Assembly (NCBI RefSeq): GCF_052425735.1
Contig: NC_135760.1
Span: forward strand, 13,392,001-13,456,000
Reading direction: 5' to 3'
DNA from: Oculina patagonica
Lineage: Eukaryota
DNA: 64,000 nt
The position numbers and the translations under genes were made by a program. Within the stretch, counting starts at the first letter, position 1. The number at the start of each line of letters is the position of its first letter. Under the pieces are notes generated by a model that was given only the letters and a program-made list of their open reading frames with translations, was not told where the DNA came from and searched no databases. Positions 23,626-43,089 of this stretch are shown here, one piece after another.

Positions 23626-23631
23626 ACTTGA

Positions 23632-23847: not shown

Positions 23848-23870
23848 TTATATGTTTTTTTATAGTGCGT

Positions 23871-26800
23871 TTAAAATAAACTTTGAATTTTATAATGTCC
23901 ATAAGAGTAACTATTGATCCCATTATCAAGTATGTACCGTTTATCATCAAAACAACTGAGTGATATTTTATTAATCTCATAGCTTCCGAGTTGATGATTT
24001 TGACTCCTGATGGTTTTCATTTTATGGTGCATTTGCTTGTTGTCAAATAATGTTTGCTTATAGTTTTCATGTGTGATATCTTTTTTGATGACGGATTTCT
24101 TGATTCCTTTGGCAGTCTTTCCAACTTGTAAATTGTTTTTAATATAAGAATACATTTTTGATCGCAGACCAATGAATTCTAAAATAGGAATAAAAGAAGC
24201 TTCATCTTTGAATTTACCAATGACTTTCTTGTTTGTTTTATTATAAAATGGAGAGCTTTCAGGGTAGTCACTATTGTCAAATTTTTCCTTATCATTCCAA
24301 AAGTCTTTGTAAACATCATCAGCCTCAATTTCATAGGTTAAGCTATCAGTATCTGTAAATAAAAGCCTAGCTTTATCCCCATATTTTTCTTTGATATAAT
24401 TGTAATGAAAATCATACATAAGTGTTTTGCTAAGATCTAGGATACACATCCCAATATATGCCGGCCTATTGAGAGTGAGTGTTTCTTTGATCTTATGAAC
24501 AGCTACGAGGTCTTCATTAAATATCTTACTGCTGACATAAGTTGGTTTACTTGTAAGCTTTAATAGCTTCTTTGTATTAGTTACCAATCTGACATCTACT
24601 CGCTTTCTTAAATTTTCCATGGTTTTACCGTATACTGAATTATTCATCAATTTAAAAAAGTCTTTTTCAAAAGTGTTTTTAGAATTTTTGCGTTTATCAG
24701 TATTAAAATCAATGTATTGCTTTAACCATGGAGATTGATTAAATTCTAACACTCGATGGACTTTGGTTAATTTTAAACCGAGATCTAAATACAACTGAAG
24801 ATTCTTGTAATGTAACACATATTTTTCCTTATTATTCAATGTAGGCATCAGTTTATGTACTAAACCTGTTGATATATTGTATTTTTCAGCAATGTTTTTG
24901 CAATAATCCGATAGCATATTTTGAGTTACTTTTACTTTTTCTGATCCAAGAGGATAGTCGTTATGGAGATCATGTAACTTTTTGGGGTATTCTAAGTCAA
25001 CTTCTAAAATCAAACCCTTCTTACTGTTTTCTGTATACTTAGATAAGTTTGTATTATTAATCTGCTTTTCTGTCAACCATTTAAAACCACCAGTTGGTAA
25101 AAATTGACTCATAGCCCATCCATAAAGGTTGTTTGCATCAAGATACATAATATACTTTGAGGGCACCTTTTCATTATATTCTTTCATGTATTTATTGTTT
25201 GCTTTACTATATCGATTGGCTATATAACTAATACCTCCTCTCATACCCTTTTCAATGAATTGATACATGTCAATGTCAGTCATCAACTCTAATTTAATGT
25301 CAGTCATCTTTAGCATAGCATCCCAGCTTAAACCTGGGGATGTGAAATAATGACATGGATCAAGCTTATAATACTTAAAACAGGTCTTACGGAAGCTTTC
25401 AAAAACATCTGCTAATAATAAGACATCTGATTTTAAATATAAATCATGATACTCACCCATATTTTTGATCTTAAACGTTTTCCACACATTTTTTGCATGC
25501 TTATAGTCTTTGTCTGATATATGCTCATTATTTAATATACTGTAAAATTCTTCTTTAGTTGGTAGCTCTGTATTAAATTTATCAAAGCTATCCATATAGT
25601 CATAGGGATAAACTCCTTTCCTCGACATAAGATTAAGCTTATCACCCTCAAACATTTTAGAAGTATATATTAATTTTTCTCTCGGCAGATTACTTACTAA
25701 TTTATCAAGACTGGAACTCATAAACTGGAAACTATCAAGGAATGTTAAATGATTACCGAGCATGAATGCCATATACTTTTCTATGTTGTTGGGTATAGCA
25801 TTGATATTCATCTCTTTCATTTCACCTTTTTTATTTTTATATGTATGGTTCTTAACAATACTTCCGATCTCTTGCATTATAAAGTGACTGTCATATCCTC
25901 TTAGATTATGAAAAATGACTGGTATTTTAATTTTATCGGGCTCTATTCTTAATTTAAGATTGCATTCTTGATGAGCTGATCCTCGATATTTACCAGTTAT
26001 ATGGCAATGGTCTCTAACTCGTATATCTTCGTCAGTATATTGTTTGTCACAAATATGGCATCCGTTTGCTTTTTGAAATGCATCTTCATCATCTTGAGTC
26101 ATTTTTAATGGTTTTTTAAAGAATTTTCGCATAGTCGTTTTGCAATATTTAACTTCATCTAGCATAGCTTCCATGAATTTATAAACAGCTTTTTCACCTC
26201 GGTATATCTGAACAGGCTTTGAATATTTATCATCATAGCAACAAACAACCTTATAACCATATCCACAATCTTTGTGTTTTTGATAAGCTTCAGTAAATGA
26301 TTTATCATCATTAGGCTTACAACCAGATATCTTTTCTGTTATTGCTTCAAAATCAGCATATATGGTGAATGGAACTTGCTGTTGCTTATGAAAGTTATTG
26401 AATTTCAGTATACTATTATCCTTATCAGGCATCTTTACTGCTTGAGTCCCATTGACTTGAATGCAATTATCTTTGTGATCGTTTAATACTCTCTCAGAAC
26501 TAAAGCACTGGAGACAATACATGCAAAAGAACTTCTTTTCTTTGTGTTTTGTTTTGTTATACATGAATTTATTGAAATCTTTTATTAGAATATAATGCTT
26601 GTTTTCATTTTCAGTTATCAATAATAAATTCATCTGATTGTCATACTTTTCTTTTGATATAAAAATGGGATATGGTTTCTTGTCTTCGTAACCGAAAACA
26701 TTTATATTGATTTCATTCTGTTTCTCGATTTTGTTGAACTGCTTTATATTCACAGGAAAATTAATTCCATCATAATTTAACTTTTCAACATATGCTTTAT

Positions 26801-27627
26801 CCGATTTTTTGATCCTTTGAGGGTATTTATCTTGGGGATTAAGATGCCTGATATGGCACCAACGGAAGCATTCATTATCCTCATTTTTCATGTTAATCAA
26901 TCCTTTTGCGCTGTTTCTAAGTTCTTGAGGAAGCCGAATATATGAGGAGCCTTTCATTGGTTCATATTTCACTATATTAAGATAGTGACCATCAACAGAT
27001 TGCAATAGCCCAGCCCGAGCCTTCTGATATCCACTGAGCTACGAAATTTAAGATTTGTTGTTTTGATTTTTGTAGCGATTCAGCAATCTCCATACTATTG
27101 ATGATTGTTTGAGGTTTGCTGTTGAAATAGGCTGTTTTATAAATAATGTCATCACCAGACATCTTTGAAAATGTTACCTTCAGCGTTTCAACAAATTTGA
27201 TTCCCTTTATAGCTATAAGGGTTTTTATGATATGATATTCAACAGCTTTCCTTGTGTTTTGTAGTTGTAATAACGGGTCTTTGTTATGTTTTATACCAAT
27301 TTCAAAAGACTTTGTGTAGCCTTTCATAGCTTTAGCAACTTCCTCTATCTTAGTCCTTGGTAATGGAATTGGGTTTTGTTTTATAGTCCTAGGCATTGGT
27401 ATAGGCTTGTAATCATCCCTAAATTCAGGAGGTGGTTGAATGATATTTTCCTCATAATCCTGCACCATCTGTTTTACACTCTTACGAGGAGTTGGGATTG
27501 GTGGCCTAGGTTTGTAAACTCTTGGTTGGTTTGCTTTTAGTGATAATACTAGTTTTATGAGTTCAGTTTTAGATAATTTTTCTAGATCTAATTCATTCAT
27601 ATTAATATATGAGATATTTTTTTCCAT
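23871..27627 (-). CDS. polB: Protein-primed family B DNA polymerase, split into ORFs 26992-27627 and 23871-27005 by a 1-nt insertion at ~27003; ~1251 aa if repaired
   Basis: Exonuclease motifs YADFE, FHNLRGYD and YLKSDV; polymerase motifs YLDANNLYG, KLMNNSVYGK and FTDTDS. An EndoVII-like insert CHIC...VRDHCHITGKYRGSAHQECN and a C2H2 finger CMYC...HKDNC are present. Removing base 27003 gives a continuous EGSGWAIQSVDGHYLN. Confidence 0.95.
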
Positions 27628-27793
27628 TTTTGTGTACTATATAGAATTACCATTTCTTTAAGTCCTTTATAGTAAAAATTATTTTTTAGATTTTTTTGGT
27701 GCGTTTAAAAGATAACCAGAAATAAATATATTTTTGGTCACCTAAGGCAACAGATAACAGCAATTCATATATACTGTGCTATACAATATATAA

Positions 27794-28033
27794 TTATATA
27801 ATATTGCTTTCTATGTTTTCAGCTGGTATTATGTTGTATTGGTCTTCATTAGCCTTGATAACAGTATTTTTAATATGCTTCTTGGTCCTTATGTGAGAGT
27901 GCTTTCCAGCGAGCGTGTAGTCATGTTGACATGCATCACATATCCATGATTTGTTTAGCATATATCTGGTCTTGCTTTCCTTAATAGCGTTTTGTCTGTC
28001 TTCTTCATTATCGTATTTTTTATTTCGTCCCAT
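27794..28033 (-). CDS. Small C2H2-type zinc-finger protein
   Basis: CDACQHDYTLAGKHSHIRTKKH (C-x2-C...H-x5-H); AT-rich leader. Confidence 0.7.
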   Translation of the reverse strand: MGRNKKYDNEEDRQNAIKESKTRYMLNKSWICDACQHDYTLAGKHSHIRTKKHIKNTVIKANEDQYNIIPAENIESNII

Positions 28034-28153
28034 TATATATACTATATATTATTTCCTTAAGTGTTTTTTATAGTGCGTTTAAAACTGGAAATATCAAAAT
28101 TAACGTACTATAAAAAGTGACTTAAAGAATTGTTATATAGTATAATTATATAG

Positions 28154-28468
28154 ATGAACAAACAACTGGTTGAAATGGAAACAATCGAGATGCTGGATGA
28201 TATATGGTTTATCCATAGCTTATATCCAAGTTGGGGTGCTAATGAGTCTGGTGATATTCTTTATATTGCCAAGAGGAAAATTTTGAAACCAAAAATGACT
28301 GATTCAGGAATGGTATTTAACGTTAGCAATGGGCATGGTTTTAGGCTATATCAAGTCGATAAATTCGTTTTTGAGGTTTTTAATGATATTGAATCAGTTG
28401 ATGGTGATATCATTCATATAGACGGTGATATAACCAATAACAGCTTTCTTAATTTGAAGCTTGTATAA
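28154..28468 (+). CDS. NUMOD4/HNH homing-endonuclease-like protein, possibly degenerate
   Basis: N-terminal HSLYPSWGANESGDI..KILK and C-terminal VDKFVFEVF...IIHIDGDITNNSFLNLKLV match the HNH_3 pattern VHRxVxxxF...DHIDGxxxNNxxxNL. Confidence 0.65.
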   Translation: MNKQLVEMETIEMLDDIWFIHSLYPSWGANESGDILYIAKRKILKPKMTDSGMVFNVSNGHGFRLYQVDKFVFEVFNDIESVDGDIIHIDGDITNNSFLNLKLV

Positions 28469-28576
28469 TATTAATAATTTGGTTTGCTTACACAGCTTTT
28501 ATGGTATATAAATATATTCTTTATATTTATGCCTTGTTGTAGTAGCATAAAAATAAATCTTACATATTAGTATATA

Positions 28577-28726
28577 ATGTCTTGTAATTCACAAATTCAC
28601 GATGAATTAAAGAATATTGAAGAGTTTTCATGTCGTTATTGTGATCAACTATTAGTGGAAGGCGATATTGCCTTGAATCATCTTTATATAAATATATTTA
28701 TATATGAGATGTTTTGTGATACATAG
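28577..28726 (+). pseudogene. Truncated paralog of the N-terminus of the downstream VLTF3-like gene
   Basis: MSCNSQIHDELKNIEEFSCRYCDQLLVEGD aligns with MRCFVIHSDLKIMGEGSCIFCNELLYTGD of ORF 28704, then degenerates and stops at 28724-28726. Confidence 0.7.
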
Positions 28727-29342
28727 CGATTTAAAAATAATGGGTGAGGGTTCTTGTATTTTTTGCAATGAGTTATTATATACAGGCGATAAAGTTGTTG
28801 ATCATTGCTGTGATAAACCTGATATTTTGGAAGATGCATATATGAAAGTATGCCAAAATTGTGGGACTCAGAATTATAAATATGTTAGCGAGTATTTTGA
28901 TTTTTACGAGAACAGACACAAGATATGGCGTAAAAGCATCTATCATCGTAAATACCATATTGAGAATGTTTTAAACGATTTATGTATTAAAAATGGAGTT
29001 CAATTGTCTCATAATCATCGCGATAAGATTTACAAAGTGTTTCATGAGATCGATACTATTCTTCCATCTATAAATAAAAGAAGAAAGAGGATGATCTCAA
29101 CGAAATATATTATAAGACAGTTGTTTAAAATGCTCGGTATACCATACAATTTTATCTGTGTTACTGAATCAAAAAAAACGCGAGCTTTTAATGATCGGTA
29201 TTGGGGTAATATTTTAGAATTGAAAAATCGTCCCAGATCGTGCGGCTTATTCAGTAAATTTATTATCATATTTTACCATATACCGATCTATTATTGGGCC
29301 GTTATCGCATATGTAGTCGTCAATGCTTTTCATTGTATTTAG
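28704..29342 (+). CDS. Cys-rich protein resembling poxvirus/NCLDV late transcription factor VLTF3 (A2L); its C-terminal end probably reads through into the neighbouring gene
   Basis: Zn-ribbon CCDKP...VCQNCG; YHRKYHIENVL (cf. YxRxxHFxExL); RKRMISTKYIIRQLFKMLG...ESKKTRAFNDRYWGNI (cf. RKNFLxYxYVLxKL...KSxxKxxxxDxIWxxI). Confidence 0.55.
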   Translation: MRCFVIHSDLKIMGEGSCIFCNELLYTGDKVVDHCCDKPDILEDAYMKVCQNCGTQNYKYVSEYFDFYENRHKIWRKSIYHRKYHIENVLNDLCIKNGVQLSHNHRDKIYKVFHEIDTILPSINKRRKRMISTKYIIRQLFKMLGIPYNFICVTESKKTRAFNDRYWGNILELKNRPRSCGLFSKFIIIFYHIPIYYWAVIAYVVVNAFHCI

Positions 29343-29746
29343 GATGCTAGACGGATTATAATTGCCACCCGTTCTCATAGTAACTTTAATAGAGTGTCAA
29401 AAGGTGTATGCATATAGGTTTGGGATGCATATATGGAGTTATGAATTTTTAGATCGAGATTTTTATGATCATCAAAGCCTTGAATTAATAACGAAATTGT
29501 AGTTATTGTAACCAAAGCAATACCACCTGTAGCTATAGAGGAGGCAAGGAAGCCGCTTGATGCAAAGAGGATAGACAATGAATTCCCTAATAACTTCCAT
29601 TTTTTGAAACGTTTAACAGCCTGCTTATAAGCCCAACATTTTCGATGATATGTTTGATAATAAGCTTTCAATTCTATAATTTGGTCTTCAGTAAGTTCGC
29701 TTGATATATGGTTCCATGTAAATATGCATTTTCGATGTTTAGTCAT
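29247..29746 (-). CDS. Two-TM membrane protein with a frameshift near 29395-29410; the C-terminus SIKVTMRTGG...KYDNKFTE* is in another frame
   Basis: Hydrophobic hairpin LLGNSLSILFASSG...GGIALVTITTISLLIQG. A stop-free continuation in a shifted frame ends with a stop at 29247-29249. Confidence 0.6.
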
Positions 29747-29778
29747 ATATATTAGTTATATATGATTTTTTTGCTTTA

Positions 29779-29895
29779 TTATTTTGTCATTTTAGCATTG
29801 CGCTTGTTCTTTATTGTGTAATACAGCTTCCTTATGTTTTGAATTAATCTCTCAATAGAATCAATAATATTGCTAACCAATTTCACTGTTTTCAT
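29779..29895 (-). CDS. Possible 38-aa basic amphipathic micro-ORF (MKTVKLVSNIIDSIERLIQNIRKLYY...)
   Basis: Fills the gap between two co-oriented genes and has an AT-rich TATATG start context. Confidence 0.35.
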   Translation of the reverse strand: MKTVKLVSNIIDSIERLIQNIRKLYYTIKNKRNAKMTK

Positions 29896-29932
29896 ATAAT
29901 TTAATTAGATAAAATCGTTGGAGTTAGATAAT

Positions 29933-31978
29933 TTATTGGAAGAATACAGCCTTTGTTTTATCTAAAAATTGGATTTTATGATACTCTCTACCATTTATCG
30001 GATATGCAGTTTTACTAAAAGCGATTCTTTGTACATAGTAATCTGAACTGATTTTAATGTTGGATGCATTGATATTAAACCTAGACAATGTTTGATCAAT
30101 ACTCATAGCATTATTGCAAACAGCGATTCTAAATTGATTTCCTATTTTAGTATACCAGAGATTCAAATATTTATCAAAATATGTTCCTCTTATTTGCTCT
30201 GTATATGAATCTAGATCATAATCGATGAATAGCTTATTATGCTCCACTTTAACCCACGGAAAACTAAAACTATCACCCTCGATAAATTCAATTTTAATCC
30301 TTTTATTATCACTGGGCTTATAGTCATATTTAAATGCCATATATATAGTCCAGTCATTGGATTCAGTGATATTTTCATTTAAATTAATTTCGAAACCACT
30401 CATAAAGCCGTTTTTTGGATCAAAATCTTCTAACAATTTTGTGGGATTAAAGACAAGATTGCCATTTAATCCAGACACTACAGCACCGTTACTATCTGAC
30501 ATGATGAATTCAGATGGATCCGTTAGATCATAAAAATACTCGAAAATTTTATGGTAATAGCTGATGTTTCTTTTCTTATCCATTTTTAATTCAAGATCAG
30601 ACTTCAAATTGTCCCGAAAATTTTTTAACTGTTCAAAATTAACAGCTTGGTCATTAGTAGTAGCTGGTTTAATACCATAAATAGCCTTTGTTTTCATATC
30701 AATCGATGCATTGAAAGCTATTCTATCATTTTCAACATAATATAGCTGATCGTATATCCTAGGATCAACGTTACTCTGATAACCTTTTATTCCATAAATC
30801 ACGATATATGTTTGTAATTTTGGGACATATGCGTTCCCTGATTTCATCTTTAAAACGATATCAACATAGAGATAATTATTAGGATGTTGCTGATATTTAT
30901 TAATTTGTGCTATTGTTCGACTATATCCATCATAAACTCGCGTAGTTGATTTGTCGATGTTGTCGATTGATGATACAATATCGATATCTAGACTATCATG
31001 ATCTATTTCAGCTGGAAAAAATAGCTCGAAAACCATTGTGTATCGATTGATTGGTAAACTATATACATTGATACCTAATCTGCTTGAGTAGTATCCTTTA
31101 TTGTTGTCAAGTACCAGCTTACTGTCTACAACTTTCGTATTGATCTTATGGTATGAATTCGGATGATCGATTAAACTGCCTAACTTTATATCATCTTCCT
31201 CGCTTAATTGATTGATACTATCGGCCATTATATGGGCAAACGTGTTTTCTTGGCCAACGGAAGTTATATGACTGCTATCAACATGATCAAGCATATATTT
31301 TTTGTTTACAGCGTCTGTATCATTGGTTGGGATTTTTAGATGGGTTATATTATACCCACCCATATGGAGATTTGCCTGCATCATGTTACTACCGTGAATA
31401 TCAAGCTTGCTTAGAATTTTTTGAGTCAAAACGCGTCCTACGACCTTCTTTAAAAAACTGTTATCAACGTACGATTTGTCTGCTTTGTTTTGAAGGCTTT
31501 GAGCTAAGACACCTCCTGATTTCTTCGTTAAATATGTATTATCAGCGTACGATTTGTCAGCCTTAGTAGCAAGTTTGGTATCAATTTCAGTCCTTACTTT
31601 GTTATCCTCAACACTAACATAGCCTACGTTTGGTACAGATCGATCGTTATATAAAGTTGGATAATACACTTCGGTATTTTGCAATGAAAGGCCGGCACAA
31701 TCAAACACTGTTTCATTTCTGTTCTTTTTAAGGAAGAATTGGTTAAGATATCGTTTATTTACGGCCGTCTCGAGATCCCTTGAATAATTTTCAATTGAAT
31801 CATCGATCGCAACGTCATCAGGCGTTTTTAGCCCTATTACTCTCTTTTTGTTCAAATTGAAATTACCTTCAGGCGTAACATCAAAGCCGACTCCTGGGTC
31901 ACCCTTTTCACCTCGAGGCCCTTTAATTGGCGTAATATTAGTGTTATTTGATTGTAATAAACCGTTTGAGTAACTCAT
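29933..31978 (-). CDS. Putative fiber/spike (receptor-binding) protein
   Basis: Collagen-like GPRGEKGDPG; three neck-like repeats (TAVNKRY, DAVNKKY, QAVNFEQ); a 26-aa tandem KADKSY repeat; beta-rich C-terminal domains. Confidence 0.65.
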   Translation of the reverse strand: MSYSNGLLQSNNTNITPIKGPRGEKGDPGVGFDVTPEGNFNLNKKRVIGLKTPDDVAIDDSIENYSRDLETAVNKRYLNQFFLKKNRNETVFDCAGLSLQNTEVYYPTLYNDRSVPNVGYVSVEDNKVRTEIDTKLATKADKSYADNTYLTKKSGGVLAQSLQNKADKSYVDNSFLKKVVGRVLTQKILSKLDIHGSNMMQANLHMGGYNITHLKIPTNDTDAVNKKYMLDHVDSSHITSVGQENTFAHIMADSINQLSEEDDIKLGSLIDHPNSYHKINTKVVDSKLVLDNNKGYYSSRLGINVYSLPINRYTMVFELFFPAEIDHDSLDIDIVSSIDNIDKSTTRVYDGYSRTIAQINKYQQHPNNYLYVDIVLKMKSGNAYVPKLQTYIVIYGIKGYQSNVDPRIYDQLYYVENDRIAFNASIDMKTKAIYGIKPATTNDQAVNFEQLKNFRDNLKSDLELKMDKKRNISYYHKIFEYFYDLTDPSEFIMSDSNGAVVSGLNGNLVFNPTKLLEDFDPKNGFMSGFEINLNENITESNDWTIYMAFKYDYKPSDNKRIKIEFIEGDSFSFPWVKVEHNKLFIDYDLDSYTEQIRGTYFDKYLNLWYTKIGNQFRIAVCNNAMSIDQTLSRFNINASNIKISSDYYVQRIAFSKTAYPINGREYHKIQFLDKTKAVFFQ

Positions 31979-32002
31979 ATTATATCAATCAGTTATATTA
32001 TA

Positions 32003-32644
32003 TTATATTTTTTCATTGAAATTCTTAGTTACGAATTTTCGTGGCTTATCAATATATAAAAAGCTAAATGGGTCTGCAGTTGCTTTGAGATAGTCGTTTT
32101 TACTGATTCCAAGTTCTCTGCAAATCATTCCTTGTTCATTATTAGATGGGAATTCGAAAATACAGTGATGAGTACAATTTAATCTGATTGTTTTATCGGT
32201 ATTATAATAGCTTTGAGATAAATAAATGCAACTGCAATTTTTATTTCTTGAATTTGTAAAATAGTTGCGTATTTCGCTATCATTTTTTGATCCCGTATTG
32301 AGATAATCGTCAAAGATGACTAGTTTTTGTCCTTCATCTGATATTTTATCAAGCGGTATTATTTTATCATTACTTGCTTCAATAACAGAATAACCAGCCT
32401 CTTGATTAAGGGGTTCAAAGGTATTGAAAAGATGTTGATATTTTGATTGTTGAAGATTTTTCCCATACAAATATATTTTATCATAAAACAATAGCCGATA
32501 TATCATATCAAGTAAAAGGTTTGATTTACCTCCGCCTGATGGTGATGAAATCAGCATCCGGAAACATTGATTTGGCATGAAATCGTATAGTTGTCTAAAG
32601 TTTGAGGCCATATCGTCTTCAGTGTCATAATTCGGTATTCTCAT
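32003..32644 (-). CDS. A32/FtsK-HerA-type genome packaging ATPase
   Basis: Walker A SPSGGGKS, Walker B LVIFDD, and downstream SRNKNCSCIYLSQSY and IRLN. Confidence 0.9.
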   Translation of the reverse strand: MRIPNYDTEDDMASNFRQLYDFMPNQCFRMLISSPSGGGKSNLLLDMIYRLLFYDKIYLYGKNLQQSKYQHLFNTFEPLNQEAGYSVIEASNDKIIPLDKISDEGQKLVIFDDYLNTGSKNDSEIRNYFTNSRNKNCSCIYLSQSYYNTDKTIRLNCTHHCIFEFPSNNEQGMICRELGISKNDYLKATADPFSFLYIDKPRKFVTKNFNEKI

Positions 32645-32780
32645 TATATTATATGGGTATATTATTTTCAGTTCAACAAGGTGTTCAACACGGTGTACAT
32701 CAAGGTGTTAAACGCTATGTTAAATGTTGATTTTTATATTCAATTTTCATTTTTTATGTAACGTAATAATATAAAATAAA

Positions 32781-33791
32781 ATGAGTTTACTTAGATGGAA
32801 AGAGCTTGCAAAGAGTAAATCTGATTTGGGCGATAAAATCAATTATGTTAAAAATGCAATCACACAAAATAATATCGGTCAGCAGACAAGCCAAGAGTCA
32901 TTTTCGAAGGTATTCAAACCAGTGACAAGTAAATTAGATGATGTAATTAAAAGTAATTTGCAGATAGCAAAAGTACCCAAAAAGCGTGTCAAAAAGGGGA
33001 TGAGAGGTGAAATGGAAGCTCCAGATTACTATCCTGAAGTTGATCCTTTTGAGGATATGGACGTAGATAATTTATTTGATGAGCCTGTAATGCCACAAAA
33101 TGAAAAACAGATTGTACCGAAACCACCAACATATGAAGAATCTTTAAAAGATCTTTTAGAAGGAAATAAGGAGATTTTTGTTGATCCCCAATATTTTCCT
33201 GAATATGAAGATGAATTACCTCCTGAATACGATGAGGATGAAATTGATTATGCTTTAGATGCTGATGATGAAGTAAGTGAAATACTAGAAGACGTTGGTA
33301 TCGACGATTATGATGTAGTGCAAATGAAATTAGATCAGCCTGAAATGACACCAAAAAAAACCAAGAACTATCTTAATAAGATTTTAGAGAAAGCCAAATA
33401 TAAACGGAGACAATTGAAAGGTTTCAAGGCGAATGTTACTAAAGAATATAATAGGGGAACTATATCTGAAGCGGAAAGACAGATTAAAAATAAGAGAATA
33501 AGCAATGCAAGAGTTGCATTAAATGACTACATAAATCATTACGAAAGTAAAGCCAAAACGATAAAAGGTTCTGGTATTCGAAAAAATCAGAAAGGTGGAA
33601 ATGTTATATTTTTTAACGATGTAAAACAGCTTCTCAAAAAATTGGAATTGATCATCGGTTCAATAAACGCAGGAAACACATCAGTTAAAATGCGAAATAT
33701 GGGAGTCGCTATATTAGACACACTTTTAAAAAGGTCTACTATAAATAAACAACAATATAAACAGATATATAATCTGTACTTTAAAGTCTAA
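32781..33791 (+). CDS. Conserved Polinton protein of unknown function (acidic centre, two PPxY motifs, C-terminal LIIGSINAGN motif)
   Basis: First gene of the co-oriented morphogenesis cluster. The LxLxxGSxxAGN motif recurs in Polinton proteins. It contains a candidate protease site, IKGS/G. Confidence 0.65.
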   Translation: MSLLRWKELAKSKSDLGDKINYVKNAITQNNIGQQTSQESFSKVFKPVTSKLDDVIKSNLQIAKVPKKRVKKGMRGEMEAPDYYPEVDPFEDMDVDNLFDEPVMPQNEKQIVPKPPTYEESLKDLLEGNKEIFVDPQYFPEYEDELPPEYDEDEIDYALDADDEVSEILEDVGIDDYDVVQMKLDQPEMTPKKTKNYLNKILEKAKYKRRQLKGFKANVTKEYNRGTISEAERQIKNKRISNARVALNDYINHYESKAKTIKGSGIRKNQKGGNVIFFNDVKQLLKKLELIIGSINAGNTSVKMRNMGVAILDTLLKRSTINKQQYKQIYNLYFKV

Positions 33792-33813
33792 TTTATGTAA
33801 CTGTATTATATAT

Positions 33814-34572
33814 ATGGATCGTGAGTTAGTATTATCATCATATAGTGTTAAAAATCAAGGGAATAACACTCCTCAAAATTTTACAACTAAATTCAACAGG
33901 CCTATAACATTGGATAGCAATTACCAATATATGATAGGTCTCAATCGTATTATTAACATGTCATTTACATGGTTTAATGTAAATCCCTCATATGGTAATC
34001 AGCTGATTAAATATAGTTCAGATAATGGGAATAAATTTGAAGACATAACTTTCCCTGCAGGTGTTTGGAATTATTCTGAATTTGATGAATATATTAAAGA
34101 GATTACTAAGACGGGGGATGATGATAACCCTATATATCCCATCTCTATTGATTTTGATTCAACAACATTCCGAGTCACAATCACTTTATCTCAAAATTAT
34201 CAACTTGATTTGACGCATAGCAATTTCAACGACCTTATAGGGTTTGATAAAAAGGTATTAAAGGATGCGGTTAATATTGGTCCAAGAGTCCCAAATCTAA
34301 GCCAAGATACCGATATATTAAATGTACATTGCGATCTAGTCAATACTTCTTTAGTCGATGGCGAAGAGTCGGATATCATTTATACTTTTTCGACCAGCGT
34401 ACTACAGCCGAGTTATTCGTTTACAATCGAGCCTCGTAGGGTCACATATAACCCGGTTAATAAGCAACAGATAAGTAGCATTCGAATATACATCACAGAT
34501 GGGAAGAGACGGTTAATTAACCTGAATGGAGCGGATACGTCTTTTTCATTAATTTTGAAAAGGATAGAATAA
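33814..34572 (+). CDS. Minor capsid protein (penton, single jelly-roll)
   Basis: NTPQNFTTKFNRPITL, LNVHCDLV and ISSIRIYITDGKRRLINLNG motifs; position upstream of the MCP. Confidence 0.85.
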   Translation: MDRELVLSSYSVKNQGNNTPQNFTTKFNRPITLDSNYQYMIGLNRIINMSFTWFNVNPSYGNQLIKYSSDNGNKFEDITFPAGVWNYSEFDEYIKEITKTGDDDNPIYPISIDFDSTTFRVTITLSQNYQLDLTHSNFNDLIGFDKKVLKDAVNIGPRVPNLSQDTDILNVHCDLVNTSLVDGEESDIIYTFSTSVLQPSYSFTIEPRRVTYNPVNKQQISSIRIYITDGKRRLINLNGADTSFSLILKRIE

Positions 34573-34591
34573 TATAACATAATAGTATATA

Positions 34592-34993
34592 ATGAAACCA
34601 TATGAATTCAAGAGGTTTTACCATCCAAAATTTGGTAAATTTGTATATAAGCACAAAGGGTCAGGGATTATCGTTGATAACATTTTCAAACCGATGAAGA
34701 GTGTTATGTCGTCTGTTGTTAAAAAAATTGTCAAGCCCTTAGGTAAGAAGGCAATAAAATCAGGTATTTCTCATGCAGGTGATAAACTGGGTAAAAGGGC
34801 ATCAGAAAAAGCCGGAGACCTTATAATGGAAAGGCTAAGGAATATGAGGAAGGGAAATGCTGGGCAAAAGTCACTATCCCCAATCTTACAGAAAGTAAAT
34901 GCCTCACCTGTCAGACACCAACAGAAAAATGAAAGTACTGATATGATCATTAATAGATTAATATCAGGATCAGGTGTAAAAAGAAGGCGTTGA
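34592..34993 (+). CDS. Basic amphipathic virion protein, adenovirus pVI-like (membrane-lytic candidate)
   Basis: KGS/G followed by the amphipathic helix IIVDNIFKPMKSVMSSVVKKIVKPLGKKAI; C-terminal ISGS/GVKRRR; lies directly upstream of the MCP. Confidence 0.55.
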   Translation: MKPYEFKRFYHPKFGKFVYKHKGSGIIVDNIFKPMKSVMSSVVKKIVKPLGKKAIKSGISHAGDKLGKRASEKAGDLIMERLRNMRKGNAGQKSLSPILQKVNASPVRHQQKNESTDMIINRLISGSGVKRRR

Positions 34994-35058
34994 GTAAAAT
35001 GAATAAAATGATTAAAAAAATTGGTACATAATTGCAAAATTATGTAACATAATAATAT

Positions 35059-36324
35059 ATGTCTTTTAGAACAAGCGAATACTTACAGAGATATGAGTTG
35101 GTTCGATTTCAACTCGATGATGTAATTCGAGTCCCAGCTAACGGTCAGCACCAACTTAAAAACGGCTATAAGTTCACGATTAACGATAGAAGTTCATTCT
35201 ACGATTGGTATAATGCGTATTTCGAGGTGCAATTTCAGGTGCAAATGTTAGCTGATGGAGCAACCACGGGGGCGAATCGTATCACAGTTATTAATGGAGC
35301 ACATTCATTGATTGCCCACATGATGATTAAATCAGCAGGAAAAATCGTTTATGATACCGATAATCTCCATAAAGTTACTTTCGTTAAGAATCTCCTCGAA
35401 TATAGTGACGATTTTAGTCGTTCAGTAGCAAAAAATAGTCTTTGGTATCTAGATACCGACCATAGGATAGCAAATGCTAATCAGAATGCAGGGTTTGAGG
35501 CTAGGCGACTTTTGACGACAGGTCTCAATGATGTCAATGTTGTTATACCTCTAAATCGTTACAGTTTCTTTGAAGAGCTGGAAGGTCGAATGTTACTCCC
35601 AATGCAACTCCAATTCAATATACAGTTACAGAATGACGCCGAATTACTTAAAAAGGCCGATGATGTAGCTGATGGACGAGTGGTCCTTAATAGATTCCTT
35701 CTATGGGTCCCAAAATTGACTCCAAAGGACAGCCTATATGATAAGTTTGTTAGTTCCTTCTTGGTAAAGAACACTTGGACGTATATGCGCGAAATGTATG
35801 AGGTTTCCGCACCAACGAATAGCAGTGGATTCTTCCAGATCTCATCCAGTATTGATAATGTTAAGGCTATCTTTGTATATCTACAACGAGCTAAATCAAA
35901 CAATGCAGATGAAAATCCCTATGAATTTGATACCTTCAATATCAATCTTGACCGTGGGAATGGTAGTTATTTGACAACATGCCGATTGGAATACGGCAAC
36001 GGAGTGTTTTATCCTGAGACCGAATATGATAGTGAGTCCAAAGTTAGGATCTTCAATGATTTGATGTCTTATGGTATGAGAAAGAATGATTACAACAGCG
36101 GTACACAACTCAACTTGGCAAATTACAACTCTCTCTATCCTATTATCTTTTTTGATTTATCATATCAAGCAGAGCGAGTAACTAGAGACCCAAAGCAGTT
36201 GATCTTCAGATATAAACTAAACGCTAATAGTGCGGGAGATAGTCCTTTCAACGTCCATGCCATCGTTCTTTATGATGAGACAATCGTCATTGACAAGGTG
36301 GGGAATGAGCTGGTTATTGTATAA
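35059..36324 (+). CDS. Major capsid protein (double jelly-roll, Polinton PY/hexon-like)
   Basis: 421 aa, beta-rich; motifs VKNLLEYSDDF, IPLNRYSFF, LWVPKL, FYPETEY and YPIIFFDLS; located between penton and protease. Confidence 0.85.
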   Translation: MSFRTSEYLQRYELVRFQLDDVIRVPANGQHQLKNGYKFTINDRSSFYDWYNAYFEVQFQVQMLADGATTGANRITVINGAHSLIAHMMIKSAGKIVYDTDNLHKVTFVKNLLEYSDDFSRSVAKNSLWYLDTDHRIANANQNAGFEARRLLTTGLNDVNVVIPLNRYSFFEELEGRMLLPMQLQFNIQLQNDAELLKKADDVADGRVVLNRFLLWVPKLTPKDSLYDKFVSSFLVKNTWTYMREMYEVSAPTNSSGFFQISSSIDNVKAIFVYLQRAKSNNADENPYEFDTFNINLDRGNGSYLTTCRLEYGNGVFYPETEYDSESKVRIFNDLMSYGMRKNDYNSGTQLNLANYNSLYPIIFFDLSYQAERVTRDPKQLIFRYKLNANSAGDSPFNVHAIVLYDETIVIDKVGNELVIV

Positions 36325-36415
36325 ATCAATCAATTGAATATTATGTATAAACCATTCTATTTTGTATACGTTTTATAAACAAGAAATTATATAACATATA
36401 ATATATATACAAGTA

Positions 36416-36922
36416 ATGACAACTTATCACTCTCATAAAGTGAATCTGTCAGAAGGACAGCGAAGGAAGCTTTTGACTGCTTATAGAAATAAAAGTGAGA
36501 TCACTATTCGCTTAAGCAATTCAGATATGACTGGCAATGACAGTTTAATGCTAACTCAACGACAAATCAATAAATTGAATAAGGCTAAGAAGTTAGGTGT
36601 TGGATCTTATTTAAACATCTCAAAGGCACAAATTCGAAAGGTCATTAGGGTCGGTCATGGGGCACCGCGGATTGGTTTTCCAATGATTGGAATAAGTGCT
36701 ATGAAAACGAAAACAAGATCAAGAAGGTCAACAACTAACAAATCAACAACTGATAACACTTCAAAGAAGGATGGTGGAAATATTAGACTACCAAGTAAGA
36801 AAGATGTATTAGCTTACACACCGCCACCATTCATTGGTTCTTGGGATGAATATGATAAATTTCTTAGAACAGGTGGATTGGTGCTTCCAAAAAAAAAGAT
36901 CTTAAAACCGAAAAGAAAGTAA
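36416..36922 (+). CDS. Basic putative core (DNA-condensing) protein
   Basis: Pattern VNLSEGQRRKL...TIRL...LMLTQRQINKL..A...G...ISKAQI seen in Polinton structural modules; K/R-rich, with GxG motifs. Confidence 0.6.
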   Translation: MTTYHSHKVNLSEGQRRKLLTAYRNKSEITIRLSNSDMTGNDSLMLTQRQINKLNKAKKLGVGSYLNISKAQIRKVIRVGHGAPRIGFPMIGISAMKTKTRSRRSTTNKSTTDNTSKKDGGNIRLPSKKDVLAYTPPPFIGSWDEYDKFLRTGGLVLPKKKILKPKRK

Positions 36923-36951
36923 GAAAGCCAACATTCCATAAGAATATACCA

Positions 36952-37383
36952 ATGAGTAATTTTGATTTAATAAACTGGTGTTTATATTTGAATATACCGA
37001 TAAAAAATGTACTAATGAGAGACGAGACTGTGCCACATAATCACAAATTAGGAATATTCATTTACAATCTCCAACCGTCATATCTGAGTGGTAGTCATTG
37101 GGTTGCAACTTATGTAAAAGATAAGGTAATCAATTATTTTGATAGTTTTGGTATGCCTTCATTTCAAAAAATAGTCGATCACGCAAAAAAGAAGAATTTA
37201 ACATTGCTACATCAAAACAATCAGATACAGAATATAAATACAACCACATGCGGATACTTCTGTTTATACTTTTTGAATGAGATGAACCATGGGAATACGT
37301 ATTCTAATTTGTTGGAAGTGTTTGACATATATGACACAATGAAGAATGAGAAATTCATTCAACATTATTTCAGAAATATATAA
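36952..37383 (+). CDS. Adenain/Ulp1-like cysteine maturation protease; the frame is open from 36868 and may be reached by -1 frameshift
   Basis: Catalytic motifs GSHWVA, YFDSFG and QIQ...TCGYFCLYFL. Confidence 0.92.
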   Translation: MSNFDLINWCLYLNIPIKNVLMRDETVPHNHKLGIFIYNLQPSYLSGSHWVATYVKDKVINYFDSFGMPSFQKIVDHAKKKNLTLLHQNNQIQNINTTTCGYFCLYFLNEMNHGNTYSNLLEVFDIYDTMKNEKFIQHYFRNI

Positions 37384-37397
37384 CTTATATATATATA

Positions 37398-37850
37398 ATG
37401 GTTAAATCGTATTGTGTACGTGAAAAAATAAAAACTAATTCAGTTCCTAATTCTGAAAAATATATGAGAACAAAAAACAATCGTTTAATACTCAAATCGA
37501 AATGCGTTTCTTGTGGTATTACTAAAACCCGTTTTGTTAGTGCCCAAAAAAAGAAAAAAGGGCGTGGAGTAGGTGAAACGATTAACAAAAAGGTCGGCGA
37601 AAAGATTCCAGGGTTTCAACAGGCTCAAGACTTAGCATCGGCTATCATGGCAGTTACCGGAGGTGATAAAGATCTATTTAAAAAATATTGGCGCGGTGAC
37701 TTTGCTAAAGGTATATTTAATAAAAAAAGCGGAATTCAGACATCTAATTTTTGGAAGCCTGCTGGTGCATATACAAATGAAAAATTTAATCCATCATGTA
37801 ATTACACAGAATATAAAAACGGCAAATGGGTTAATCATTATTGTGATTAA
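37398..37850 (+). CDS. Zn-ribbon (DUF5679-like) basic protein with a unique C-terminal region
   Basis: YCVREK...TKNNR...KSKCVSCGITKTRFV followed by KKGRG. Confidence 0.6.
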   Translation: MVKSYCVREKIKTNSVPNSEKYMRTKNNRLILKSKCVSCGITKTRFVSAQKKKKGRGVGETINKKVGEKIPGFQQAQDLASAIMAVTGGDKDLFKKYWRGDFAKGIFNKKSGIQTSNFWKPAGAYTNEKFNPSCNYTEYKNGKWVNHYCD

Positions 37851-37869
37851 TATCTAACATATAATATAT

Positions 37870-38482
37870 ATGTGCCTGTCATACTGCGTTTCATGTAATA
37901 AAAAAACAAATTCAATCAATACTAAAAAAGTAAAAGCAAAGAATGGCCGACTTATGGAAAAATCAATTTGCTCAATCTGTAAAAACAAAAAGAGTAAATT
38001 CATCAAAGGTGGGGCTCTTGCACGTTTAAAGCCCTTCTCTGTTGTTGTTCTTTGTCTCTCCTTTGGGTGGGGGCGGAAAGGAAGGTATCGATATCCATAA
38101 AGCTATTTTAAAAGTAGCACCAAAAAAGGGTTTTGTAATGCCTGGTCATCGTTATACAGGTCCTGGTAATCCTTTAGAGAAACAGGTAAAGTGGGATCAA
38201 AAAACAGGTAAAATACTGGAGATATATGAAAAACCAACAGGAAAAACGGACGCCGTGAGCATGCAACATGACGTGGATTACTCAGTATGTGCAAACAAAC
38301 CATCAAAAAATCAGGTTAAATGCAAAAACGAAGCTGATAAAAAGATGGTAAAAGCCCTTGATGCTATCCCATGGAAAGACAGACAATGGGGTCATGCTAT
38401 TGCAAGGAACACTATTGCTACCAAGGCTAAAGTAGGTATGGGTGTAAAACAAAAGAAGACAAAAAACGGAAAACGGCGTTGA
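37870..38482 (+). CDS. Zn-ribbon plus parvovirus VP1u-type phospholipase A2 virion protein, interrupted by a 76-nt insert/intron at 38009-38084
   Basis: YCVSC...KNGR...CSICKNKKSKF; PLA2 calcium loop PGHRYTGPGN and catalytic QHDVDY...EAD. Removing 38009-38084 gives in-frame FIKGIDIHKA. Confidence 0.8.
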
Positions 38483-38533
38483 GTAAAAATGATTGGTCTC
38501 AACAATTAGCCGATGAGTTACATAAACCAATCA
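38461..38533 (+). promoter_or_regulatory. Predicted -1 programmed ribosomal frameshift signal (A_AAA_AAC plus H-type pseudoknot)
   Basis: In-phase heptamer at 38461-38467. Stem 1 is GTTGAG 38478-83 / CTCAAC 38498-503, extendable by CGGC 38474-77 / GCCG 38509-12. Stem 2 is TGATTGGT 38490-97 / ACCAATCA 38526-33. Confidence 0.7.
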
Positions 38534-39429
38534 GACGAAAATTTAAAACTAGAAGAGTAATATCAAATGGAATTGACGACATATGGTCTGCTGATTTAGT
38601 TTTTATGGATAAACTTTCAAAATGGAATAAAGGTTATAAATATCTATTGACTATAATTGACGTATTCAGTAAATTCGCTTGGGCTATTCAATTGAAAGAT
38701 AAGAAAGGTGCATCAATAACTAACGCTTTCAACAATATTGTCATTAATGACAAGCGTAAACCTGAATATCTCTGGGTCGATAAGGGATCTGAATTTTATA
38801 ACAAAACATTCAAGGAATGGCTAAAGCAAAATGATATTAACATGTATTCTACTTTTAATGAAGGTAAAGCTGTTGTTATTGAGAGATTTAATAGAACTTT
38901 GAAAAATAAAATGTACAAACAGTTTACTATTCAAGGTAATACACAGTATCTTGAAATGCTACCAAAAATAGTAAAAGAATATAATAATACAAAACATAGC
39001 TCTATCAAAATGACACCCATAGAAGCTTCAAATAAAAAGAATGAAGGAACTGTTTACTTTAACCTATACGGTGATATGAAAACATCAAAACAGAAACCGA
39101 AATTCAAAATAGGTGACAAGATCCGAATATCTAAGTATAAACGAATTGTTTTCGATAAGGGTTATACACCGAATTGGAGTGAAGAAATGTTCGTAATTAC
39201 TAAGATCCAACATACTAATCCCATTACATACAAATTGAAAGATCTCAATAATGAAGACATACAAGGAAGCTTTTATGAACCTGAATTATTAAAAGCAAAA
39301 CAGGATGTATTCAGAATTGATAAAGTGATCCGTAGAGATTATAAGAAAAAACAAGCTTTAGTTAAGTGGAAAGGATACAGTGATGACTTCAACAGTTGGA
39401 TTCCAATCAAGGATTTGAAAGATATATAA
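38479..39429 (+). CDS. Retroviral-like (rve) DDE integrase with C-terminal chromodomain; no AUG before the first catalytic Asp
   Basis: ELHKP, WSADL, IDVFSKFAW, VDKGSEF, IERFNRTLK and YNNTKHSSIKMTP; chromodomain LVKWKGYSDDFNSWIP. Confidence 0.95.
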   Translation: MSKNDWSQQLADELHKPIRRKFKTRRVISNGIDDIWSADLVFMDKLSKWNKGYKYLLTIIDVFSKFAWAIQLKDKKGASITNAFNNIVINDKRKPEYLWVDKGSEFYNKTFKEWLKQNDINMYSTFNEGKAVVIERFNRTLKNKMYKQFTIQGNTQYLEMLPKIVKEYNNTKHSSIKMTPIEASNKKNEGTVYFNLYGDMKTSKQKPKFKIGDKIRISKYKRIVFDKGYTPNWSEEMFVITKIQHTNPITYKLKDLNNEDIQGSFYEPELLKAKQDVFRIDKVIRRDYKKKQALVKWKGYSDDFNSWIPIKDLKDI

Positions 39430-39548
39430 TCAATTTTTAAGAGTGCCTTAAAATCAATTATCAAGTATTACACATGCAAATAAAAATATTAAGTATAATA
39501 TTTTTATAAATCAGTATTTGATTACAAAAAATATTTTAGGACATACAT

Positions 39549-39908
39549 TCATTTTAAAAAAACATTGAATTTATCAACAACTAATTTTTCATCTAATTGA
39601 TTTTCATTATAAAAAAAGGTATCAATATTTATAATACTACAGCCGTTATCAAAAAGCATTTCGACAATATCTAAATTAAACAAATTTGATATTACGTAAT
39701 TAGTATCTTTATAATTATCAAAATATGCTTCAATATAATCGGCCCATGGGTTAGCCCCGCCATCCATAACAATTACACTGTTTGGCTGATTAAATACCAT
39801 GTGCTTGAAATTAAATTCATCTTCTAAGATTTTAGCAATTATTTTAATATCATTCGATCTATTATTTTTATCCGAGGTTAAACCGATTATAAATCTTTTA
39901 TTATTCAT
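39549..39908 (-). CDS. Degenerate deoxynucleoside-monophosphate-kinase-like protein
   Basis: IIGLTS...IAKILEDEFNFKHMVFNQP...YVISNLF...GCSIINI parallels IIGLxGxxGSGKDT.A..L...GF....FA.P...VI.DvRF...GG.II.I, but the P-loop GK is missing. Confidence 0.4.
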   Translation of the reverse strand: MNNKRFIIGLTSDKNNRSNDIKIIAKILEDEFNFKHMVFNQPNSVIVMDGGANPWADYIEAYFDNYKDTNYVISNLFNLDIVEMLFDNGCSIINIDTFFYNENQLDEKLVVDKFNVFLK

Positions 39909-40013
39909 ATATATATTACAAAGAGATTTTATTTTTATATGGATTTATGTGTTTTTCCCTTAAACGCACTATAAAAAACACATATAAAAAAAAAAAATGT
40001 GTCATAATATTAT

Positions 40014-40355
40014 ATGAGTAAAGCAGATATAAAAAACAACCAATTATCTAATTTAATCAATGAAATAACATCAAATCATGATACAAACAGTTGCTCAAAA
40101 CATGTAATATCTATACTAAAACTTGTAATAGCACTCAATAAAAGAGCTCAATTAAATGAAAAAATATTATTCCATTTAAAATCCATCTCAAATTTAAATC
40201 CAATAAAAAACATCCATAAGCTACAAGAATTGAGTAATCATTTAGATTCTCAAGTTAAAAAAATTGATATTTTAAAATCACAAATCATCAATTCAAACAT
40301 TAAAAAAATAGAAATCATTATAAAAGATGATAATATAAATTTATCTGAATGTTAA
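40014..40355 (+). CDS. Polinton hypothetical protein (helical/coiled-coil)
   Basis: Open 113-aa frame with a TATTATATG start context; no recognisable motif. Confidence 0.45.
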   Translation: MSKADIKNNQLSNLINEITSNHDTNSCSKHVISILKLVIALNKRAQLNEKILFHLKSISNLNPIKNIHKLQELSNHLDSQVKKIDILKSQIINSNIKKIEIIIKDDNINLSEC

Positions 40356-40409
40356 ATGACCAATCCACTATAAAAGAGATATAAAAAATAATGTATAATA
40401 AATATTATA

Positions 40410-40589
40410 ATGGCATCAAATTACATCAAAGAAAAATTCGTTGAGATGATGAATATCATAGAAAAACATTGCATTAAAGACAATACACTTTTCTTACAAT
40501 TAAGTGAAAAGGAACAATCAAATATATTAGTTAACATTTGTACTGATCTCGGTATAATATCAAATATGATTCTACATAAAAACATGTAA
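40410..40589 (+). CDS. Polinton hypothetical 59-aa protein (MASNYIKEKF...)
   Basis: ATG at 40410 after TATTATA, stop at 40587-40589; below the ORF-track cutoff. Confidence 0.4.
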   Translation: MASNYIKEKFVEMMNIIEKHCIKDNTLFLQLSEKEQSNILVNICTDLGIISNMILHKNM

Positions 40590-40645
40590 AAAAATCTGAT
40601 AAAAATACAAAAATATTATATTGAAAATGTAATATAAGACGTTCA

Positions 40646-40931
40646 TTTTAAACGCACTAAGATGCAAGATTTTTAAAAAAGAGTATAAGAGATTTTGAAA
40701 TAAAACTCGGCTTCGCTTGGTTTTCCAGATTGATATTTCAGTTATGATATCAAGGCTTGTTTAAACGCACTGTATCTAAAATTTTGAAAAAGAGTATAAG
40801 AAGTTTTGATTCCATTTTTTGAATCCAGTTTTGGATCCAGTTTTAAATCCAGCACTGGAAAGTAGTATGTACTTGGGGAGATGAAATTATTTTTTAAAAA
40901 ATGATTTCGTACCCCCAAGTACTATACTACT
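40646..40931 (-). repeat. Polinton right terminal inverted repeat
   Basis: Reverse complement of the left end; ends ACTATACTACT followed by TSD AGTTTT. Confidence 0.93.
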
Positions 40932-43089
40932 AGTTTTAAGAACGCAGAATTTTGTGATGCCGTGCTACTTTTCATTGCTGAAATGCAAATGTTTGACATG
41001 TTTGTACCACGATTTTCAACTGGCCCACATGGGGATTGTAAATGAAGTAAAACAAAGAAAGACCAAGTCAACAAACAACCTCAAACAATAGAGCAAGAAC
41101 AATAGCTCCGACCAGCGCGGGAATATTCGATCGCCACGTTTTCATTACCATTCCCGTGATGGTTTTATTTCATAACAAACACCACATATTGACACCAAGA
41201 ACCTTTTCGGAGAAATTTTCGCTGCTTTAAAGTCAAAACTTAGAAAGTCTTTTTTATTACTACATATATAAAAAAAATCGAACTCTCTCACTGGTCCCAT
41301 ATTTTTGTTTTGGCAAGTTCACAAAGAAAGGAGCTGCTCATGCGCCTAAGAGACATCCGCTGACTACCGCCCCGATGATTGCTTTGCAAGTTGTGAGAGC
41401 ATCGCTCAGATTTCATATAAGAGAATGTATGGGAAGTTGCTTCCCCCCCCCCCCTGGCACAAACAACACTGCTATTTGTTGACCTTTGTCTGTTTTCCTC
41501 ACAACTGCTCCCCACTTACTTAGGAATCATACAAGATTAACAGTTCGTAGAGAAGATAAGTTTTTGTGTTATCAGATAAGATTCAAATTGTGGTAGAGAG
41601 ATTCAGGTAAAAATTTCTTTAATTCATGCAAGTCTCGCTGCGAACCAAAGATAACAGATTCGGCAGGCATAATCTGTGCATATTCATGAGAAGGCCAGAG
41701 CACACAAGCTAATGTAGCTCTTCAAGGCATAGTACAGGACGGTGTTGAGTACACTATAGTGCTTCAACTTCCTTTTTAATAAACCTTTGGTGTCTTAGAA
41801 GCACGCACGTCGCATTCCTGACCAACATATGGAGAAATAATATTGGAAAGGACTCTTAGAAAGTCTAGAAAAATAACAGCAACAGTTTCTGTCCTTTTTT
41901 CTGGCTGAGTTTCAATGCTTTTATCATAGTGTCAGTCAGCCTGAAATTTTTAATTATAACGCGATTGGATATGACAAGCGTCCTGACGGTGCGCACATAA
42001 AGTTTCTGCCTCAATAGAAATAGCTGCTGATAAATTACGTGCTTTACAAGCATATGAACACCTGGCTTGTATATTATCCCTCTCTGATGTCAACTGCCTA
42101 ACTTCTTTGCTGATATGCATGTATGTCTTATCATAATTGTCGGAATGATTTGACCATGTTTTAAGTGTAGTCAGTACTAGTGTAATACACTTGTGACCAG
42201 TTCTTTGGTTTTCGCCGGTAACCTATATACTGATCACAAGAGTAAAGTAACTTGATTTCAGCAGGTTTCTGAAATATAATTCTACCTGTATGGCCATTAT
42301 ACGATGCTTTTGCTGGTTTGTGTTACCGTTTTTCACGCGATGCAGGCCTCTTACAAAAGTGTAACTTTACGACTTATCTTCGGGGACTTGGAGGGCGATA
42401 ACCGGGCTAGGTGAAGTTAAAACGAAGAAAACCCACGGCACCTTACAAAAGTTTCCATATCAGGAGAAAGAGCCCCGCTTTTCAGCAGTTCTTTAATAGA
42501 AACGTTTGTGGTGTCTATTTCGTGTAGTTTTATAGAAACGTTTGTGGTGTCTATTTCGTGAAGTTTTAACTTGCCTTTTGCCGTGTTTAATGGCCCCTGA
42601 CGCGAGGATGTTTTGACTTCTAATGAATTTATAGACACACAAATGAAACTAAAAACGAAGTGGCTTTTAATGTCTTGACATTTCATAGACTAGTATGAGA
42701 GACTGATATAAATTAATAAAGTGCAATTTCAATATCTCCACTGAGTAGCCACTGAAATGGTTTTATAAAATTCTAAATTATGGATCTGTCAAACTGCGCG
42801 TCAGGTTTCAGTTTTTAATAATTTGCAAGACAGTTCATTTGTCGGTCCTGAATAGAAGGTAAAATTAAAACCTTACGACCACTGACAAAACGCCAGTATT
42901 TTCTTGCTTGTCAGTCAATACATTTACATTTGCATTTATCGCATTAAAAACAGGTGAAGACTTTTGTTTTGTTGAGACCGTATTGCATTGGGCGGCAGTT
43001 CGAGGCAGTGCCAGTTCCTCTGAAGAAAAGTCAAGCCTTGACTCAAACAAGGAGCTCCGCTTCTATTCAAAAGGAAAACTCTCGGCATC

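Follow-up and report, generated by a model that had tools for sequence, protein, structure and literature searches.

How a Polinton could express an integrase whose reading frame has no start codon is the question raised by a locus of Oculina patagonica. The window analyzed here is a stretch of 64,000 nucleotides (NCBI RefSeq assembly GCF_052425735.1, contig NC_135760.1, positions 13,392,001 to 13,456,000 of the forward strand), and coordinates without a locus name refer to positions within it. The window contains a Polinton/Maverick (adintovirus-like) element of 18.3 kb at 22672-40931, which as a whole has no strand assigned. It is flanked by 6-bp target-site duplications (AGTTTT, 22666-22671 and 40932-40937) and bounded by terminal inverted repeats (TIRs) of approximately 280 nt, which are 99-100% identical when one arm is compared with the other. 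The left arm (22672-22952, forward strand) is complementary to the right arm (40669-40931, reverse strand) over 233 nt at 99% and a further 36 nt at 100%. The host flanks (1-22600 and 41000-64000) hold short ORFs only.

The gene content of the element was examined with Pfam domains. A protein-primed family B DNA polymerase (PolB) is encoded on the reverse strand at 23871-27627 (PF03175, E = 8e-17); it is a single ORF in the relatives L003, L086 and L091, and one frameshift divides it into two overlapping ORFs in the window copy, where no slippery site was visible in the overlap. The PolB of L001 is also split, at another place. In addition, the element encodes an A32-type packaging ATPase (PF04665, E = 1e-9), a VLTF3-like factor and, at 36952-37383 on the forward strand, an ORF whose match to the adenain-like cysteine proteases is weak and below the cutoff (PF00770, E = 0.0013). 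None of the ORFs of the window element had a Pfam match to a capsid protein, and a DJR-like domain is present in the relative L090. No reverse transcriptase, LTR or Gag was found among the ORFs of the element; its replicase is PolB and its ends are TIRs. Since PolB, an rve integrase, TIRs and a 6-bp target-site duplication are all present, the element belongs to the Polinton/adintovirus-like type.

Nine genes of the element carry a common leader, TAAC followed after 10-16 nt by ATG, in an AT-rich context. The leader-bearing starts are at 32781, 33814, 34592, 35059, 36416, 37398 and 37870 on the forward strand and at 29746 and 31978 on the reverse strand; this motif probably serves the virion module as a late-type promoter or leader. 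Two tandem ORFs (37398-37850 and 37870-38100) each open with a DUF5679 Zn ribbon and a leader motif of their own. No such leader was found upstream of 36952, 38138 or 38479, the integrase and the internal PLA2 ATG being without one. This bears out the remark, made from the sequence alone before any comparison, that the integrase lacks the leader of its neighbors.

The integrase lies directly downstream of a gene for a Zn ribbon (DUF5679) and a parvovirus-type phospholipase A2 (PLA2), and all features of this junction are on the forward strand. The Zn-ribbon/PLA2 gene, taken as the zero frame, extends from 37870 to 38482 (PF08398, E = 5e-9 for PLA2). Its start codon and its TAAC...TATATG leader, of the type common to eight other genes of the element, occupy 37855-37872, and its stop codon is the TGA at 38480-38482. 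The C-terminus of PLA2 consists of a conserved G-x-G motif and a lysine-rich linker. The integrase frame is -1 relative to the PLA2 frame; it opens at 38431, after a TAA at 38428-38430, and its first ATG falls downstream of the first catalytic Asp, just as the sequence-only reading had described. The integrase coding region (38461-39429) is intact and includes an rve core domain at 38578-38844 (PF00665, E = 2e-12, residues 50-138 of the frame opened at 38431) and a C-terminal chromodomain at 39313-39423 (PF00385).

The PLA2 domain is likewise intact in the window copy. One deletion with a frame change has put the Zn-ribbon ORF (37870-38100) out of frame with the PLA2 ORF. For this reason, the Zn-ribbon-PLA2-integrase product of approximately 490 aa that had been predicted is not encoded in the window copy, although the architecture itself is found in intact relatives such as P0060. 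We also observed, at 38386-38430, that the conserved QWGH motif of PLA2 includes an integrase-frame ATG. The frame shuts 14 codons further on in the window, while it stays open in a class of 335-345 aa (P0038, L091), so that gene callers start the integrase there.

Within the overlap of the two frames, the codons ACA AAA AAC form the heptamer A_AAA_AAC (38461-38467) in phase with the PLA2 frame. The element is A-rich and has 39 in-phase heptamers per 4713 codons, three of which are A_AAA_AAC; the chance expectation in the 17-codon overlap is thus 0.14 for any heptamer and 0.011 for A_AAA_AAC. A spacer of 6 nt (38468-38473) separates the heptamer from stem 1, whose 5' arm (38474-38483) contains the PLA2 stop codon and is the positional homolog of a 5' arm conserved in other lineages. 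The 3' arm (38498-38512) contributes 6 bp (38498-38503), a 5-nt bulge and 4 bp (38509-38512), and as a hairpin the stem has an energy of -10.6 kcal/mol. The loop of stem 1 contains the 5' arm of a candidate stem 2 (38490-38497), which is complementary to 38526-38533 over 8 bp with a duplex energy of -9.0 kcal/mol. Heptamer, stem and loop complementarity are thus all present as first described.

To evaluate this geometry, we defined a pseudoknot-compatible pair as a first stem of at least 6 bp starting within 13 nt and a second stem of at least 7 bp from the loop to the downstream sequence. Dinucleotide shuffling produced such a pair once in 5000 trials, and 25 of the element's 3286 natural 73-nt windows had one. 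The nested minimum free energy of the window junction is ordinary (-11.7 kcal/mol, z = -0.87), and an Rfam search gave no match at the junction site. In the lineage of the window copy (8 loci), the local stem has energies of -8.5 to -16.3 kcal/mol and always a spacer of 6 nt; in L092 the partner has been relocated and forms a continuous 9-bp stem. The stems of this lineage were paired in 91% of cells with zero double changes, in a set of 9 sequences whose columns are nearly invariant. Stem 2 is otherwise invariant, and its last pair is broken in five of the eight sequences. The other lineages, which pair with a distal partner, have neither the complementarity of stem 2 nor the local 3' arm of stem 1. 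The H-type pseudoknot proposed by the sequence-only reading therefore stands as a geometry in the window, and as a structure it is possible but unproven, because stem 2 is confined to one lineage, does not vary there and has lost its last pair in most members.

To reveal whether the arrangement is conserved, we compared the junction with those of related elements. Thousands of integrase relatives were found, and the best 120, at 62-89% identity, came from ENA assemblies and Oculina patagonica. The junction sample comprised 32 related junctions that had not been selected for fusion, from at least seven ENA assemblies and several JGI metagenomes; the metagenome loci were picked by integrase similarity alone, and further ENA loci were added. 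The -1 layout, with a canonical X_XXY_YYZ heptamer in phase with the PLA2 frame, was present in 27 of the 32 junctions, two others being near-misses and three having lost the heptamer. The in-frame layout was found in none of the 22 metagenome junctions, short-read assemblies included. In one sublineage (L011, L031 and L039), the heptamer at the same place is G_GGA_AAC, likewise a canonical slippery pattern, without a long homopolymer.

The phase of the heptamer is not independent of the layout, since any copy in the -1 arrangement that spells Lys-Lys-Arg as AAA AAA CGN will have A_AAA_AAC in phase. We therefore discounted phase as independent evidence and placed the weight on whole-codon indels, the G_GGA_AAC lineage, the stem and selection. 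Eight linker lengths occur between the G-x-G motif and the heptamer, namely 1-7 and 10 codons, and each is a whole number of PLA2-frame codons; 3' of the heptamer, length changes are whole codons of the integrase frame. The coding frame therefore switches exactly at the heptamer. Depending on the locus, the PLA2 frame stops 0-16 codons 3' of the heptamer. As a separate observation, a run of 13 A residues in L086 (approximately 2460-2500), giving an in-phase A_AAA_AAA, replaces both the heptamer and stem 1, and this sublineage may rely on a different mode of slippage.

In most lineages (18 loci), RNAalifold returned a single consensus helix, the 5' arm of which begins 7 nt past the heptamer; its partner lies approximately 65 nt downstream. 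In this distal stem 95.9% of cells were paired, compared with 26-52% when the partner was slid. The decayed L031 had a duplex energy of -6.6 kcal/mol, and the other 17 of the 18 loci lay between -13 and -21 kcal/mol; none of 200 shuffles was as stable as the native fold of L017 (z = -4.05). Both arms are coding sequence, and synonymous diversity was 0.12 in the arm codons versus 0.34 elsewhere (p = 0.002), with GC-rich rare codons kept. Covariation in the distal stem is thin: there is one double change, and the remaining changes are mostly transitions that preserve a G-U pair. In the window lineage, the distal partner has been lost and the same 5' arm pairs locally as stem 1. A stem starts 6-7 nt past the heptamer in all of the lineages examined. 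In L011, L031 and L039, C-to-T changes at CpG in Arg codons of the 3' arm have produced a shared stop, as is typical of the decay of endogenous copies at a GC-rich stem.

We next asked whether the integrase is maintained by selection in this arrangement. Among 11 intact integrases, all in the -1 layout, the median dN/dS was 0.10 (0.06-0.17) at dS values of 0.4 up to 2.4, with 27 further pairs being saturated. These values illustrate strong purifying selection and indicate that the integrase has been translated and selected throughout in the -1 layout. No ATG is conserved among the relatives, and 15 of 26 loci lack any ATG between the opening of the integrase frame and the first catalytic Asp. 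As a point against the frameshift reading, 9 of 17 metagenome copies had a stop inside the first 110 integrase codons. Outgroup integrases at 46-48% identity either have their own ATG (L036, L048) or stand in frame behind a protease domain (L089), and the -1 layout is therefore a derived trait, specific to the family. The protease case comes from IMG/VR, on the same contig as L032 (L089, 1946-3457, 47% identity), and is a single ORF of 503 aa; its N-terminal half resembles an adenain-type cysteine protease and its C-terminal half is the integrase, which makes it an in-frame protease-integrase fusion. A scan of viral contigs yielded one distant locus only.

Fusions of PLA2 and integrase in a single ORF do occur, in approximately 25 of the best 120 matches. 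In two lineages, copies with the -1 layout and copies in frame differ by the length of an A-run by one base. Taken by themselves, these fusions had first led us to read the window junction as an indel in a decaying copy, and this reading was dropped after the unselected junctions and the dN/dS values had been considered. The fused ORFs are heterogeneous, and at least six contain out-of-frame stretches or a tail in the PLA2 frame followed by a second shift. From these features it appears that the single-ORF fusions are derived from ancestors with the -1 layout, and some of them may be homopolymer miscalls. The sequence-only reading had named homologs with their own AUG, or with the integrase in frame, as the observation that would speak against it; the relatives were found mostly in the -1 layout and share no conserved AUG.

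Taken together, the junction has the features of a canonical -1 signal: an in-phase heptamer, a spacer of the 5-9-nt type followed by a structure, an overlapping ORF without a start, and a conserved phase. We consider that the site is probably one of conserved programmed -1 ribosomal frameshifting, of which a PLA2-integrase fusion would be the product, and the frameshift at A_AAA_AAC that had been proposed from one copy has thus passed its comparative check. In the scenario that we favor, ribosomes would translate the late-type mRNA of the PLA2 virion-protein gene up to A_AAA_AAC. The majority would read on and terminate four codons later at the TGA, whereas a fraction would pause at the stem 6 nt downstream, slip back by one base and enter the integrase with its rve core and chromodomain. 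By this route the integrase would exist only as the C-terminal part of a PLA2-integrase fusion. The fusion may then carry the integrase into the particle, where the protease of the element might later free it near the conserved G-x-G motif. As for the adenain cleavage at KVGM/G that the sequence-only reading had suggested, the family-wide motif K.K.G[LM]G is a partial match to the adenovirus protease consensus, with Gly at P2 and P1' and with Lys, not Met/Leu/Ile, at P4.

Three other explanations were weighed against ribosomal frameshifting. The first is transcriptional slippage, in which the polymerase would stutter on the A-run and make some mRNAs with PLA2 and integrase in frame, so that the ribosome need not slip. 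In its favor, the site is a run of six A residues, L086 has its run of 13 without stem 1, and genomic copies standing one base apart show the A-runs of the linker to be unstable in length. However, a run of six is short for slippage by a cellular polymerase, the G_GGA_AAC sublineage has no homopolymer of a length suited to stuttering and still fits the rule of tandem slippage, and a conserved stem 6-7 nt downstream is a feature of ribosomal, not of polymerase, slippage. We regard this explanation as quite unlikely.

The second explanation is that the integrase is expressed independently, by initiation at a non-conserved or non-AUG codon, by termination-reinitiation where stop and start overlap, or by splicing to an upstream exon. 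An integrase-frame ATG does exist in some relatives, soon after the heptamer in L088 and at the QWGH motif in the 335-345-aa class, but as described above most loci have none and none is conserved. A TTG overlaps the PLA2 stop in the window lineage; given the variable position of this stop behind the heptamer, such an overlap is not a conserved property of the family. As for splicing, NCBI gene models of Oculina patagonica (P0089, P0090 and P0099) span the junction with introns, yet these are placed inconsistently between models and delete conserved integrase residues, some of them catalytic; they are probably annotation artifacts of the frameshift. An intron would find no space, since coding conservation in the integrase frame sets in at the heptamer, and GT..AG pairs across the window junction were set aside because they are shared by no relative. 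All three routes leave the conservation of the heptamer and the stem unexplained, and we judge it improbable that any of them is the main one. The last explanation, that the true gene is an in-frame fusion and the window copy lost a base in its A-rich linker by ordinary decay or assembly error, could draw on the in-frame matches, on the one-base differences between copies and on the two other breaks in the window copy (in PolB and between Zn ribbon and PLA2), but it is very improbable in view of the layout of the unselected junctions, the short and interrupted A-runs of the window linker 5' of the heptamer, the purifying selection on the integrase, the traces of -1 ancestry in the fused ORFs and the suppressed synonymous change at the stem.

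A wider scenario, to which we give about an even chance, is that a family of coral dsDNA elements of the Polinton/adintovirus-like type follows a Gag-Pol-style strategy. In this family the integrase would be made only as a frameshift extension of PLA2, and its ratio in the particle would be set by the RNA. The stimulator would have been rebuilt in the course of evolution, with the 5' arm fixed 6-7 nt after the heptamer and the partner changing from a distal one to a local hairpin or pseudoknot, and the in-frame variants would parallel single-ORF retrotransposons. If ribosomal frameshifting is correct, the junction would be a conserved -1 frameshift, backed by selection, in a eukaryotic dsDNA virus-like element, tying an integrase to a virion protein. 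It would show how these Polintons express an integrase gene without a start codon, suggest a route of the enzyme into the particle, and extend the parallel between Polintons and retroelements from a shared integrase fold to function. The site would also illustrate, in a natural setting, how a frameshift stimulator can exchange one pairing partner for another. As to annotation, gene callers split the gene or invent introns over the PLA2-integrase junction.

The known gene set of adintoviruses and Polintons comprises the virion accessory protein PLA2X, an rve integrase, PolB, a packaging ATPase and an adenain-like protease, and the integrase has been described as a gene of its own (Starrett et al. 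2021, PMC8502044). In contrast, the window integrase has neither start nor leader, and a conserved slippery site lies where its -1 frame overlaps PLA2. In a preprint, -1 frameshifts predicted with KnotInFrame are given for the Penton and Hexon-Adenain ORFs of adintoviruses (Buck et al. 2024, PMC11071296). This is the same kind of hypothesis, applied to other genes on the basis of software prediction; none of the passages found in that preprint on frameshifts or slippery sites concerns the integrase, and a term search of it did not return PLA2. A term search of a survey of 4,862 stony-coral elements (PMC11131425) returned neither PLA2 nor a frameshift at the junction, and full-text literature searches found no report of a PLA2-integrase frameshift. 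The protease-integrase ORF of L089 is comparable in that a larger maturation or virion-associated protein likewise ends in the integrase, and it differs in being a plain in-frame fusion without a frameshift.

RNA viruses and retroelements, as well as phages and bacterial insertion sequences, have programmed -1 frameshifting as a hallmark. In insertion sequences of the IS3 and IS1 families, the DDE-type transposase is made solely as a trans-frame fusion, with an A-rich heptamer and a downstream structure; these systems differ from the present one in being prokaryotic, in having a DNA-binding domain in place of a virion protein as the upstream ORF, and in involving no capsid. In tailed dsDNA phages, a conserved -1 frameshift sets the ratio of the short and extended forms of a morphogenetic protein, the tail-assembly chaperone G/GT, and these are bacterial systems with unrelated proteins and no integrase. 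The closest likeness is to the Gag-Pro and Gag-Pol junctions of retroviruses and LTR retrotransposons, which share with the PLA2-integrase junction an X_XXY_YYZ heptamer, a short spacer and a downstream RNA structure. In both, the ORF of a structural protein is extended at low frequency into an enzyme ORF without a start, which for the present element is proposed from its sequence. Chromoviruses, moreover, have an rve-type integrase with a chromodomain, as the window element does. Unlike retroelements, the window element is TIR-bounded dsDNA; it has a protein-primed PolB and lacks reverse transcriptase, LTRs and Gag. Its upstream ORF codes for a virion protein of the PLA2 type, and the downstream ORF provides only the integrase. 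The site would work like Gag-Pol, and the element is not a member of the retrovirus/LTR-retrotransposon family.
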